Origin: Macrostomum lignano
Lineage: Eukaryota
Assembly: GCA_002269645.1 (NCBI GenBank)
Contig: NIVC01000807.1
Span: forward strand, 1 to 64,000
Reading direction: 5' to 3'
Length of the DNA: 64,000 nt
The position numbers were made by a program, and so were the translations under genes. Position 1 is the first letter of the stretch. Every line of letters begins with the position of its first letter. The notes beneath the pieces are model-generated. The model saw nothing but the letters and a program-made list of their open reading frames with translations, did no database searches and was not told the DNA's origin. Positions 9,469 to 63,396 of this stretch are shown here, piece after piece.

Positions 9469-10611
9469 TTATTCGCCGTGAAGCAATTTCGACTGTTGAC
9501 GGTTGGGACGAGAAATTGCCTGCAAGTGAAAGTGCGAAAGTGAACGAATTTGTGACACAAGCTGGGTTGACAGAACTGCTCGATAGCCATTTCAGTGACA
9601 TCAGCAGACATCAGAATCCAATAATCAGGCATGACCATATCCGGAAAATCCCAGAATCCCATAGACGGAATCCCATAGCCGGACATCCCAAAGCCGGACA
9701 CCCCAGAATGCCATATCTGCACATCCCAGAATCCCATAACAGGACATCCCATCATCTCATATCCGGACATCCCAGAATCCCATAGCCGGACATCCCAGAA
9801 TCCCATTGCTGGACATCCCAGAGTCCCATAGCCGGACATCCGAGAATCCCTTTTCTGGACATCCCAGAGTCCCATAGCCGGACATCCGAGAATCCCATAA
9901 CCGGACATCCCAGAGTCCCATATCCGGACATCCCATAATCCCATAGCCGGACATTCCAGAATCGCACACCCAGTTGCGCACCTGTCCAACCCTAGGCGGA
10001 GTGGAGGCCCTGGGCCGCAGCCTGTACTCGATGACCTGATCATAGAAGCGGTCCAGCTTGACGGCATTGGTGGTGCCAGCGCTCAGCGATCTGGTGTCCA
10101 CGCAGCTGAGCAGGATCTCCGGACAGCCAATCCGAGCGGCAGCTTCGCCACCGTTCGGCCGCTTGGCCAGCGCATCGGCTTTGCACAGGTCGCTCTTGGC
10201 GCCAATCACCAGCACTGGCGGAGTGTCAGCGCCAAGGCAGCTCTCGTGCAGCCAGCGACTGAGATTGAGCTCAGTCTTCCTGTTAGTGAGGTCGTGCACC
10301 AGCAGGATGCCGTGTACACCGTGGTAGAACACGCCGCGGCTGTTCTTGTGCATCGGATAGCCGCCGATGTCCCAGAACTCCAGGAAGAACAACCGCTCAG
10401 CCTGGCCGGTCAGCTCCGACCTGTACTCGTGCAGGCCGACCTGCAGTGAGCAGCCCACAGTCCAGGCTGGATTGGTCAGCTCGCTGTGATTGGTCAGCAG
10501 GTGTACAAGCGAGGACTTGCCAACGCCGGAGTCGCCAAGCACCAGAATTTTCACACGGAGCGTGTCTTCCTGTGCCGGCGGTTGTGGGGTTTTCGAAAAT
10601 TGATCAGACAT
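9469..10611 (-). CDS. RABL3: Rab-like protein 3; exons 10611 (or 10569 if SL-initiated)..9982 and 9519..9469
   Basis: RVKILVLGDSGVGKSSLVHLL, PAWTVGCS, FWDIGG, GILLVHDLTNRK, LVIGAKSD and AGTTNAVKLDRFYDQVIE match the RABL3 family. Donor CAG|GTGCGC at 9982/9981 and acceptor ACTTGCAG|GCA at 9520/9519 (phase 0) add AISRPNRQQSKLLHGE*, resembling the vertebrate ...KSLHYD end. Confidence 0.93.
9640..9960. repeat. About 23-bp tandem repeat (GGACATCCCAGAATCCCATAGCC) inside the RABL3 intron
   Basis: Direct reading; variant units alternate. Confidence 0.9.
10570..10576 (-). promoter_or_regulatory. Candidate trans-splice acceptor (GGCACAG|GAA) at the RABL3 N-terminus
   Basis: Phase-0 CAG. AUG plus EDTLRVK gives the same N-terminal length as human RABL3 (MASLDRVK, recalled). 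Confidence 0.5.
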
Positions 10612-10621
10612 TCTACTTGCT

Positions 10622-10925
10622 CCATTTGACTCTCAGTCACTCGCTTAATTCTCACCTGACTCTCAGTCACTCGCTAAATCCTCACCTGACTCTCAGTCAC
10701 TCGCTCAATCCTCACCTGACTCTCAGTCACTCGCTAAACCCTCACCTGACTCTCAGTCACTCGCTCAATCCTCACCTGACTCTCAGTCACTCGCTAAACC
10801 CTCACCTGACTCTCAGTCACTCGCTAAACCCTCACCTGACTCTCAGTCACTCGCTCAATCCTCACCTGACTCTCAGTCACTCGCTCAATCCTCACCTGAC
10901 TCTCAGTCACTCGCTCAATCACTGT
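10622..10925. repeat. 30-bp tandem repeat (CTCACCTGACTCTCAGTCACTCGCTCAATC), about 10 copies
   Basis: Period 30 read directly; immediately upstream of RABL3. Confidence 0.95.
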
Positions 10926-11239
10926 ACTCTGTTAGTCTACTCACTGAATCTATATACTAAAAATAGTTTGTCGGTATTGCTAAATGAGGTACTGGTAAAA
11001 AAGTAAAGACAAAATCGAGCTTTTTATTAAACCATATGATTTCTTAAAATTTTATTTAAGCAATAGTAGAAATTAACAATTTACGCTCCGATGAAAATTG
11101 CACTAACAAAATTATTTTCTTCGCAATTAAAGTTTCTTATTATTAAGATTTTATAGTTTACTATAGTAGTAATTAAGCAGGTCTAAACCTACAGGTGCGA
11201 GCTATATTATGGGAAGTTTACAGCTTCATATTTTACACT

Positions 11240-60176: not shown

Positions 60177-60850
60177 GAGAGGATGGGAAGAGAGGGGAGA
60201 GAGGAAGAGAGGGGAAGAGAGGAGAGGGGAAGAGAGGAGGGGGAAGAGAGGAGAGGGGAAGAGAGGAGAGGGGAAGAGAGGAGGGGGAAGAGAGGAGAAG
60301 AGGGGAAGAGAGGAGAGGGGAAGAGAGAGGAAGAGGGGAAGAGAGGAGAGGGGAAGAGAGGAGAGGGGAAGAGAGGAGAGGGGAAGAGAGGAAGAGGGGA
60401 AGAGAGGAGAGGGGAAGAGAGGAGAGGGGAAGAGAGGAGAGGGAAGAGAGGAGGGGAATAGAGGAGAAGAGGGGAAGAGAGGAGAGGGGAAGAGAGGGGA
60501 AGAGGGGAATAGAGGAGAGGGGTAGAGAGGAGAGGGGAAGAGAGGAGAGGGGGAAGAGAGGAGAAGAGGGGAAGAGAGGAGAGGGGAAGAGAGGAGAGGG
60601 GAAGAGAGGAGGGGGAAGAGAGGAGAAGAGGGGAAGAGAGGAGAGGGGAAGAGAGGAGAGGGGAAGAGAGGAGGGGGAAGAGAGGAGAAGAGGGGAAGAG
60701 AGGAGAGGGGAAGAGAGGGGAAGAGGGGAATAGAGGAGAGGGGTAGAGAGGAGAGGGGAAGAGAGGAGAGGGGGAAGAGAGGAGAAGAGGGGAAGAGAGG
60801 AGAGGGGAAGAGAGGAGAGGGGAAGAGGGAGAAAGAAAGGGGAGAAGAGG
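60177..60850. repeat. Polypurine repeat (~GAGAGGAGAGGGGAA)n downstream of TOP3B
   Basis: Almost pure G/A on the plus strand. Confidence 0.9.
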
Positions 60851-61153
60851 GGAAAGAGGAGAGGAAAAAGGGTGAAACAGAGGGAGATGAAGACAGAATA
60901 TTAAGAAAACTGAAGCGCATTAATGAGATACAGAAAAAAAGCTTTAGAAAAAGAGAGAAAATACAAAGGAATATCGACAAGACAAGAGATGGGACTCCGG
61001 GAAATCTTAACGATGGGGCTCTTAAAACGATTCTCAGTTCTGGATTAGACAGAGCGTTTATGCGCAAACCGTCTGGTTCCCAAACCCACATTTGATACTC
61101 GATCTGTTTTGCATAATTCCAAGACGGCGCAATCACAAATTTCAGGGTTTTTT

Positions 61154-63396
61154 TCAATGTCCGCCGCGTCCTCGGCCGCCTCCGCGACCGCCGCCCCGCG
61201 TCCGCGCCCGCGCCCCCTGCCGCGCCGGCCGCCCGGCTGGCCCCGACGAAACCGGATATCCTTAGTCTCAAACAAGCCCGCCAGGTCGTTGTCGCAGAAA
61301 ATGCAGCCGGTCAGGTAGCCCTGCGGCTCGCTTGAGCCGCTCTGCTTCTGAAATAACGAGCAAAGGGTTAGGGTGGCGGTGAGGCCGGCGAGGCGTGGCG
61401 TCATCGCGTGTTTTTAAATAAAATAACACAAACGCGCGCAAAAGCATCGCGAAGCCTAATTAAGGCAGAGCTTCTAAAAGGCTTCCCGAGTTAGAAATTG
61501 TCTGCTTTCGGTGAGCAAGCCGCATCAGGACTGCAGAAGATAATTAAACGGCAAAGACGACTAAAGATGACGACAAAGGAGAAAGAGAGGGATAGATAGA
61601 TAGATAGATAGATAGATAGATAGATAGATAGATAGATAGATAGATAGATAGATAGATAGATAGATAGATAGATAGATAGATAGATAGATAGATAAATAGA
61701 GAGATAGATAGAGAGATAGATAGATAGATAGATAGATAGATAGATAGAGAGATAGATAAATAGAGAGATAGATAGAGAGATAGATAGATAGATAGATAGA
61801 TAGATAGATAGATAGATAGATAAATAGAGAGATAGATAAATAGAGAGATAGATAAATAGAGAGATAGATAGAGAGATAGATAGAGAGATACATAGATAGA
61901 TAGATAGATAGATAGATAGAGAGATAGATAAATAGAGAGATAGATAGAGAGATAGATAGATAGATAGATAGATAGATAGATAGATAGATAGATAGATAGA
62001 TAGATAGATAGATACGAGGGCTATCCCAAAAGTAAGTTTCGCTATGCTATAAAAGACAAACTAGTGACCCAAAAATCAACAAAACTTTGCAACTGCAAAA
62101 TGAACTCATAGTTACTCTACGAGTACAAATTTGCCGCCGAGGTCAACGCAGTCTCATTAGAGGTACATGTGCAGCTTTTAGATACCTACATGCCGGGAGA
62201 GTTATCGCAGATAACAGTGGTACCTAGTTATTAGGAGAGGTACCTAGATACCAGAAGAGAGTATCTAGGTAACAGGAGAACCAGGAGAGTACTATACCTA
62301 CACGTAGATACAAGGAGAGAAACCTAGATGCCAGGAGAGAGTACCTAGATGCCAGGAGAGGTACCTAGATGCCATGAGAGGCAACCTAGATACAAGGACA
62401 GGTACCTAGATGCTAGGAGGGAGTACATGGATACCAGAATAGTACCTAGTTACGAAGAGAAATAACCCAGAGATATCCGCCGACAAAGAAAAGGTACCCG
62501 ATTAAGAATAACTATATCAGGGATGATGAAAAACAACAAAAGGTACATAAAGTACATAAGGCTCACCTGGTTAGAGAACAGTCGAACCCGATTAGCATTG
62601 CACCTAGAACACTGATCAGGCAGCACGGCCAGTTTAGTGACGCAATTGTCCACCTTGAGCCCGACATCGCACTGATTGCATAGCACTTTAAATTTAGGCG
62701 GAGCAGTGGAATCCACAACCAATACGCCGGATTGGCAGGCGGCGCAGCCGTCGATGCCGTTAGACTGGACGGACTGCGGGCAGGTCGGGTGGCTGCACTG
62801 ATTGCAGCCGCTGCCTTTCTTCATATCCTCGAATGGCGGATTAGCGTAGCAATACGGGCACAATGGGAAGCTCTTTGAATTCGTGCCCTGAGTCCATAGT
62901 ACTAATTCGAAATCGTCCAAGGGACATTTGAGCTCCTTGTACTGCCGAATAGAGCCCATCTGGGGCAGATTGTAAGTGTCGTTGCAATGCGAGCAGTGCA
63001 GCCGCTGGGGCCGGGTGGCAACTAATTTCATATAGCGCTTGCACTTGCCGCACCGAGACAGCGGCTTTCCGGACTCGCACAGCGGATCGAACGACACCTC
63101 AAACAGGTCGTCCATTGCGGAAATGTGCTCCACAAAGTAGCGAAACTTGGCCGAAAAGATGTCCAATGCGTGCTTCAATACGGCTTTGTAATCGGCTTGG
63201 CCACGAGCGATGAGGTTCAGCTGCTCTTCGACCGCCGAGCGCATCTGCGGCAGGGCCAGCTCTTTGTCGATCTTCTCGTAGCCATGCACCAGCACGATGC
63301 CCAGCTCCGTTGGCATCAGCTTGCGGCCGGGCAGCAGCTGCACATAGTTCCGCTCCATGATGTTCTGAATGTGCACCGGGATGCTGGCGTCCGTGC
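61154..63396 (-). CDS. TOP3B: DNA topoisomerase III-beta, last two coding exons: 63396..62567 and 61347..61154 (apparent -1 frameshift at C4 run 61194-61197); 5' exons lie beyond the window
   Basis: [82 protein letters not shown] and GCIFCD match TOP3B zinc-finger regions. Acceptors CCGGCAG|GC and TTTCAG|AAG, donor CAG|GTGAGC. Restoring one G gives an RGG tail ending [10 protein letters not shown]. Confidence 0.93.
61590..62014. repeat. (GATA)n microsatellite in the last TOP3B intron
   Basis: Direct reading. Confidence 0.95.
62015..62160 (-). mobile_element. Tc1/mariner 3'-end remnant (one TIR plus a decayed transposase C-terminus)
   Basis: TA|CGAGGGCTATCCCAAAAGTAAG resembles mariner TIR ends and follows a TA of the GATA array. 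The minus strand reads [10 protein letters not shown], like the mariner C-terminal KCV..GGDYVE. No second TIR seen. Confidence 0.5.
62190..62450. repeat. Degenerate ~20-bp repeat (TACCTAGATGCCAGGAGAG-like)
   Basis: Recurrent TACCTAGAT motif. Confidence 0.65.

Follow-up and report, generated by a model that had tools for sequence, protein, structure and literature searches.

Do five neighbouring genes on one strand of a flatworm contig, interspersed with tandem arrays that reach 24 kb, make up a single polycistronic unit resolved by spliced leader (SL) trans-splicing, and do the arrays serve as its spacers? This question is raised by TOP3B, TAF7, CHFR, an orphan open reading frame (ORF) and RABL3, which follow one another in this order on the minus strand of positions 1-64000 of contig NIVC01000807.1 (370 kb in whole) in the Macrostomum lignano assembly Mlig_3_7 (GCA_002269645.1); we refer to these 64,000 nucleotides as the window. 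An earlier note on this DNA had suggested one or two operons, in which the large satellites would be spacers of unusual length between cistrons or mark operon boundaries. Our analysis points to an ordinary M. lignano SL trans-spliced cluster, probably made up of two or three transcription units and not of a single one, whose two giant arrays are recent, copy-specific expansions of ordinary minisatellites.

Gene identities were assigned by Pfam profile search, and tandem arrays were delimited with Tandem Repeats Finder (TRF) under its default mask. Profiles identify TOP3B (Topoisom_bac PF01131 and Zn_ribbon_TOP3B PF23546), TAF7 (TAFII55_N) and CHFR (FHA, RING, zf-CRD and PBZ); the fifth gene matches Ras/Roc and encodes a Rab-like GTPase, the M. 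lignano relatives of which are named 'Rab-like protein 3' in UniProt. No gene is called between neighbours, either from TAF7 to the orphan ORF in the annotation of the window or from TOP3B to RABL3 in sister copies of the cluster on other contigs. The order and strand proposed for the five consecutive genes therefore hold by profile, annotation and sister copies alike, and the genes are adjacent and in the same orientation with no opposite-strand gene interposed, which is how operons are delimited in M. lignano (PMC8629364). Because five genes would be co-oriented by chance with a probability of about 1/16, this arrangement alone says little. Tandem repeats account for 44,163 of the 53,928 bp (82%) from 9469 to 63396 under the TRF mask, with a 23-mer repeated 567 times and a 20-mer repeated 1,221 times besides about 20 smaller arrays (Table 1). 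The two large arrays are real, and their sizes by TRF agree with the 13 kb and 24 kb first read from the sequence; the unique DNA between a stop codon and the next gene start, estimated then at 0.6-1.9 kb, measures 0.43-1.25 kb.

The supposition that this was a flatworm with SL trans-splicing proves right, M. lignano being a species whose SL operons are published (PMC8629364). Its single SL (CGGTCTCTTACTGCGAAGACTCAATTTATTGCATG) is 35 nt long and ends in ATG; 30% of its genes are trans-spliced and 15% lie in operons, and the motif [T/C]TNCAG is enriched at trans-splice acceptors (PMC8629364). In the annotation pipeline, transcripts were cut where SL-containing reads peak (PMC5730564), and the GenBank gene boundaries of this assembly appear to derive from it, so that the starts of gene models offer an indirect readout of SL sites.

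At CHFR, the acceptor CTACAG/GAGGCC (AG at 31710-31709; here and below the slash marks the splice junction) is followed directly by coding sequence, and no in-frame ATG occurs from the upstream stop codon to the FHA domain; joined to GAG GCC TGG, the SL ATG opens the in-frame M-EAWAQLF. The 5'-partial GenBank models from three copies start 0, 6 and 12 nt past this acceptor, and two independent UniProt models begin EAWAQLF, without Met. The exon model in Table 1, three introns of which are filled with 30-, 22- and 21-mer arrays, gives the annotated proteins of 599, 617 and 619 amino acids exactly; its junctions were taken from the UniProt model, as brute-force enumeration was ambiguous, the repeat arrays being open in several frames. 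A word-indexed search with CHFR exon 1 gave no match; an exhaustive representative search did recover M. lignano CHFR models.

At RABL3, the acceptor GGCACAG/GAAGAC (AG at 10571-10570) lies 42 nt downstream of the genomic ATG (10611), and an SL ATG added there reads in frame into M-EDTLRVKILVLGDSGVGKS. All six public RABL3 models lack an initial Met and start at most six residues from the acceptor, and four of the six, drawn from two annotation sets, begin EDTLRV. With no usable genomic ATG, an SL ATG in frame and Met-less models starting at the acceptor, SL trans-splicing of CHFR and RABL3, with initiation at the leader AUG, is well supported, strongly though indirectly, which agrees at these two genes with the SL addition that the earlier note had proposed. 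Among flatworms, Schistosoma is known to use the leader AUG as initiator (Cheng et al. 2006, as cited in PMC9851317). TAF7 is probably trans-spliced in the same way: its candidate acceptor TTTTCAG (AG at 34855-34854) stands 21 nt upstream of its own ATG at 34832, and public 5'-partial models begin near it. An acceptor right at the start of the coding sequence, given in the earlier note for all three genes, is found at CHFR (31709), with that of RABL3 lying past the genomic ATG and that of TAF7 before it. In sister stretch L004 (about 9950-10000), unlike in L005 and the window, the TAF7 acceptor is mutated to TTTTCTG; the annotated model in this copy begins at an in-frame CAG within the poly-Q tract, which may be a shifted trans-splice site.

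Operons in M. lignano are recognized by a repeat-adjusted distance below 1 kb together with an SL trans-spliced downstream gene, and the inflation of their spacers by repeats is already published (Ustyantsev & Berezikov 2021, PMC8629364). With 3' ends predicted from AATAAA or ATTAAA, the repeat-adjusted distance from poly(A) signal to acceptor is 645 bp from TOP3B to TAF7 (25.0 kb raw), 491 bp by TRF or about 250 bp by eye from TAF7 to CHFR (789 bp raw), about 190 bp from CHFR to the orphan gene, in the sister copies only, and 158 bp from the orphan gene to RABL3 (452 bp raw). All four junctions fall below 1 kb, and TOP3B-TAF7, TAF7-CHFR and orphan-RABL3 would qualify as operonic if the SL sites proposed here are real. 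In the gap between TAF7 and CHFR, the AATAAA near 32500, the acceptor at 31709 and the repeat are as the earlier note described them; its figure of about 200 bp of unique DNA is somewhat short of our value by eye and well short of that from TRF.

Unit names in the annotation bear directly on how these junctions are joined, since a transcriptional unit such as Mlig030697.1 contains Mlig030697.g1 and.g2 (Wudarski 2017 Suppl. Fig. 5a, PMC5730564). On sister contigs NIVC01002993.1 and NIVC01002410.1, respectively, the orphan gene is tagged Mlig015061g1 and Mlig000840g1, and RABL3 Mlig015061g2 and Mlig000840g2; as the prefix is common to the two genes on both contigs, the existing annotation already treats them as a dicistronic unit in copies with a short 23-mer array. 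In the same order of contigs, TAF7 is tagged Mlig026986g9 and Mlig026986g7, and CHFR Mlig018430g1 and Mlig022451g4; in the window, CHFR is Mlig002761g1 and RABL3 is Mlig004564g5. The supplementary tables of the genome and transcriptome papers contain none of these gene names or unit tags, and the tags were found in no paper. The proposal of one or two operons thus survives in the orphan/RABL3 dicistron of the sister copies, and the differing tags speak against its single five-gene version.

Such a five-gene operon would have its promoter upstream of TOP3B and a pre-mRNA of more than 54 kb, running through both satellites and resolved into five mRNAs by SL trans-splicing and polyadenylation. 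The co-oriented genes with nothing between them and the four junctions below 1 kb speak for it; no poly(A) or donor motifs occur on the sense strand of the satellites, reported M. lignano operons contain as many as nine genes (PMC8629364), and an older, independent model fuses three of the genes. This model, UniProt A0A1I8FKN3 (826 amino acids, named CHFR), is a chimera of TAF7 (6-121), CHFR (177-700) and the orphan ORF (738-816), and is either weak evidence for continuity or a predictor artefact. In every copy, however, at least three different unit tags occur across the cluster, and the spacings of 645 bp and 250-490 bp fall between the published modes, not at the operon peak of about 100 bp. 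The orphan gene, furthermore, shows no SL evidence beyond a weak candidate acceptor, and the co-orientation remains an event of about 1 in 16. We consider a single unit of five genes improbable.

At the other extreme, all five genes could be monocistronic, each with a compact promoter, some of them trans-spliced only to trim the outron and donate an AUG, co-orientation arising by chance, and shared tags reflecting read-through or merging during transcript assembly. Some 60% of the M. lignano genes that are SL trans-spliced lie outside operons (PMC8629364), 2 kb or less from the start suffices for expression of the M. lignano genes tested (PMC5730564), each gene here is preceded by 0.15-0.6 kb of unique DNA, and the tags of most neighbours differ. 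This arrangement is doubtful, however, given that the orphan gene and RABL3 share one transcriptional unit in two copies and that the 158 bp of non-repeat DNA between the orphan poly(A) signal and the RABL3 acceptor is typical of operons in M. lignano.

The organization that we favour, two or three trans-spliced units, has several points to contend with. Trans-splicing is read here from the sequence and from where public models start, and look-ups surfaced no transcript-derived (Logan) M. lignano contigs. The unit tags of TAF7 and CHFR differ in all copies, that of CHFR also differs from those of the orphan gene and RABL3, and the RABL3 tag in the window matches neither dicistronic unit. As the authors warn, assembled units are prone to breaks where operon spacers are rich in repeats (PMC8629364), and differing tags are therefore weak evidence against co-transcription. 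The short unique segments upstream of each gene (0.15-0.6 kb) could hold promoters of their own. The CHFR 3' untranslated region (UTR) in the window (26516-27147) is without the two ATTAAA found in the sisters (L002/L003 9112-9128), and the stretch from the CHFR stop codon to the gene that follows has no canonical poly(A) signal. Finally, the array lengths come from a PacBio assembly and may be mis-sized.

What, then, are the two giant arrays? Sister copies of the cluster were found through the 90%-identity clusters of the orphan, TAF7 and RABL3 proteins, and comprise two contigs, further stretches and a fourth copy. They differ by 0.5-1.4% in exons and by 0.6-6% in unique intergenic DNA, a near-identity consistent with the chromosome duplication known for the line that was sequenced (PMC8629364, PMC5730564). 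Gene order is identical among the copies, and each array of the window recurs in the same place with a different number of units; the shared order was considered as a sign of selection and rejected, the copies being too recent. The two giant arrays are 12- to 50-fold shorter in the sisters, and the presence of the same arrays in short form in near-identical copies identifies the satellites as recent, copy-specific expansions of ordinary minisatellites. In the window they are homogeneous short-unit arrays of more than 10 kb, as classical satellites are, though embedded among genes, locus-specific in origin and only 0.26-2 kb long in the sisters.

Their placement also differs from what had been proposed. 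The 23-mer array begins 44 nt past the orphan stop and ends before the first AATAAA of the orphan gene, and as the poly(A) signals stand downstream of both this array and the 30-mer array of TAF7, the two are most simply read as 3' UTR sequence. In the gaps after TOP3B, TAF7 and the orphan gene, the signals of Table 1 are the sole canonical ones on the sense strand, and the sister copies have them too. On these predicted 3' ends, the 12.9-kb array would belong to the orphan gene and lie outside the intercistronic gap. The 20-mer array starts about 75 nt past the TOP3B poly(A) signal, a pair of AATAAA with no other canonical signal from the TOP3B stop to TAF7, and lies ahead of the TAF7 acceptor; it would most simply be the only one of the three to form part of a spacer or outron. 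The view of the satellites as special spacers or operon boundaries thus gives way to that of copy-specific growth, in one case within a 3' UTR.

We propose that, in the ancestral state, the genes stood about 0.15-0.65 kb of unique DNA apart, plus short minisatellites, and that in this copy two of the minisatellites would have grown to 12.9 kb in the orphan 3' UTR and to 24.1 kb in the stretch that leads from the TOP3B poly(A) signal to the TAF7 acceptor. The arrays would then be neutral, unstable passengers, neither functional spacers nor designed boundaries. The sense strand of the 20-mer and 23-mer units contains no AATAAA, ATTAAA or GTRAG, so that the arrays could be read through; the 20-mer unit carries one acceptor-like TTTCTAG per unit. 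That RNA polymerase II in this copy still crosses the 12.9-kb satellite 3' UTR to reach RABL3, and possibly the 24-kb satellite between TOP3B and TAF7 as well, we regard as unlikely.

Alternatively, the giant arrays could be assembly artefacts, mis-sized or mis-joined in the PacBio consensus, with a true locus that resembles its sisters. Two 1-nt deletions in G-runs break TOP3B and TAF7 in the window, as is typical of long-read consensus errors, and the contig of the fourth copy breaks inside the same 23-mer array, where the assembler struggled; an array of 24 kb is, moreover, near or beyond the typical read lengths of that era. Both arrays, however, are contained in a single contig of 370 kb with unique sequence in the right order on either side, the contig break in the fourth copy suggests that at least one other copy has a long array, and unit matches of only 95-97% by TRF describe imperfect arrays. 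An artefact of this kind is very improbable, and we continue to read the arrays as genuine expansions. Nothing relevant was found in the literature on M. lignano satellites.

Table 1. Features of the cluster, in the order of transcription, with copy numbers of the corresponding arrays in sister copies
Feature	Positions	Strand	Details in the window	Sister copies
TOP3B penultimate coding exon	62567-63396	-	End of topoisomerase core and zinc ribbons; PF01131, PF23546	
TOP3B last exon, RGG box	61154-61347	-	TGA stop, ending at 61154 when read in the frame of the sister copies	
CT-rich 15-mer array in TOP3B 3' UTR	60172-60864	-	TRF	Also in L004 and L005
Two overlapping AATAAA after TOP3B	59875-59884	-	Starts 59884 and 59880	Conserved in L005
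20-mer array between TOP3B and TAF7	35739-59802		Sense unit TTTCTAGTTTGTGTGGGAAG; 1,221 copies, 24.1 kb, 97% unit matches	101-103 copies (2.0 kb)
28-mer array directly upstream of TAF7	34904-35186		TRF	About 15 copies
TAF7	33552-34853	-	Exon 1 to 34249; intron 34248-33855 with 46-mer array; exon 2 33854-33552	
30-mer array from TAF7 stop codon, in TAF7 3' UTR	32802-33552		25 copies, TRF	About 130 in L005; at least 133 in two arrays in L004
TAF7 AATAAA	32499-32504	-	Sole canonical signal between TAF7 stop and CHFR; downstream of 30-mer array	
Degenerate 20/40-mer repeat in TAF7-CHFR gap	31765-32300		GAGACATTTTAG...; TRF scores 31854-32198	About 1.2 kb
CHFR	27148-31708	-	Exons 31708-31198, 31013-30644, 29625-29263, 28491-28242, 27465-27148	
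38-mer array between CHFR 3' UTR and orphan ORF	25180-26515		35 copies	17.7 copies
Orphan ORF	24200-25141	-	313 amino acids; own ATG; weak candidate acceptor CCCCAG/ about 41 nt upstream	
23-mer array after orphan gene	11249-24156		567 copies, 12.9 kb, 95% unit matches	11.3 and 12.3 copies (0.26 kb); at least 36 in the fourth copy (L006), contig breaks within array
Two AATAAA, presumed orphan-gene poly(A)	11056-11051, 11028-11023	-	AT-rich unique segment	Conserved in L002 and L003
30-mer array in gap before RABL3	10627-10920		TRF	
RABL3	9469-10569	-	Exon 1 10569-9982; intron 9981-9520 with 23-mer array; exon 2 9519-9469	

The two reading-frame breaks of the window are each a single-nucleotide deletion relative to the sisters, in TAF7 (34690-34740; G5 against G6) and in the TOP3B RGG box (61170-61230; G4 against G5), and seem to be consensus errors of long reads and not signs of pseudogenisation. 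CHFR of sister stretch L002 has a similar frameshift towards its C terminus. TOP3B extends past 64000; the 5' boundary of its penultimate exon (63396) is kept as in the earlier note, and the donor of this exon is CCAG/GTGAGC at 62567/62566.

The fourth gene had been labelled TMEM223-like. The orphan ORF matches no Pfam family, TMEM223 included, at E<=10 other than noise, and the label stands unverified. A word-indexed search of 5.8 billion proteins found no relatives outside M. lignano, its sole match being the protein of the window itself, and the sister-copy protein is the one addition from the 90%-identity cluster. Exact-protein look-ups with the orphan ORF translated from the first ATG and with the unspliced RABL3 ORF gave no match, and a comparison of synonymous with non-synonymous changes in the orphan ORF was uninformative, at 2 against 3 differences and 0.5% divergence. 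The orphan protein has a Q-rich N-terminal part and hydrophobic segments.

Around RABL3, 9 of the 9.8 units of the 30-mer array at 10627-10920 carry a sense-strand donor, CAG/GTGAG, which is odd for an outron, where no upstream donors would be expected. The RABL3 stop TAA (9471-9469) lies inside an AATAAA (9468-9473), implying an extremely short 3' UTR. Beyond RABL3, a convergent ORF of 590 amino acids on the plus strand (5820-7592), without a Pfam match, ends the co-oriented run; in the sister copies its 591-amino-acid counterpart is called as a gene and is followed by a gene containing leucine-rich repeats on the same strand as that ORF.

By eye, the consensus units of four arrays, a 23-mer (11249-24156), a 21-mer (27523-28176), a 22-mer (28565-29239) and another 23-mer (9635-9963), share a core of approximately GATTCTC[A/T]AGGA[T/G]G in the same orientation, which suggests that the minisatellites of the locus are related to one another. 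A 12-nt match (GCAAGTAGAATG) beside two array ends was dismissed, as one is expected by chance in 64 kb. The window contains no Rfam families and no copy of an SL RNA gene.

Our work mainly closes a lead, and the operon idea that started it is a re-discovery, at one locus, of a published pattern; new with respect to the literature are the size of the two arrays and their sharp contrast with the sister copies. CHFR and RABL3 add two clean examples of genes apparently dependent on the leader AUG. The cluster is, furthermore, a well-delimited test case, in which near-identical copies have arrays in a 3' UTR and in an outron or spacer that differ 12- to 50-fold, and copy-specific single-nucleotide polymorphisms would let any uncoupling of the downstream cistron by satellite expansion be measured directly. 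If read-through were true, no longer stretches filled with satellite would be known from an SL-resolved operon, and the repeat counts of the copies (11, 12, at least 36 and 567) would provide a natural dosage series on the output of the downstream gene.

The closest known system is that of M. lignano itself, with which the locus shares the species, the assembly, the single 35-nt SL ending in ATG and the acceptor motif (PMC8629364, PMC5730564), as well as co-oriented conserved genes, repeat-dominated spacers and repeat-adjusted distances below 1 kb (PMC8629364). It differs in that this locus is not described there and the larger units proposed in the earlier note fall outside the annotation; its arrays of 12.9 kb and 24.1 kb also exceed the 10-kb repetitive gap bridged by the annotation pipeline (PMC5730564). 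CHFR and RABL3, which have no in-frame genomic start, resemble the use of the SL AUG in Schistosoma mansoni (Cheng et al. 2006, as cited in PMC9851317), whereas here that use is deduced from the sequence together with Met-less public models. As in the SL2-type operons of Caenorhabditis elegans, a polycistronic pre-mRNA would be resolved by 3' end formation and SL trans-splicing, mostly in two-gene units with short spacers (mode of about 100 bp) after repeat adjustment. Unlike C. elegans, M. lignano has one SL, no dedicated SL2 is expected and the SL donates the start codon, and the raw spacers of this locus span 0.45-25 kb and are full of minisatellites. Hypervariable minisatellites and transcribed repeat expansions, for example in 3' UTRs, are known in animals. 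The arrays described here resemble them in that units of 20-23 bp change 10-50-fold in number between copies about 1% divergent, one of them in a 3' UTR; in contrast to population alleles, the copies compared here are paralogous, or lie on a duplicated chromosome, within one inbred line.

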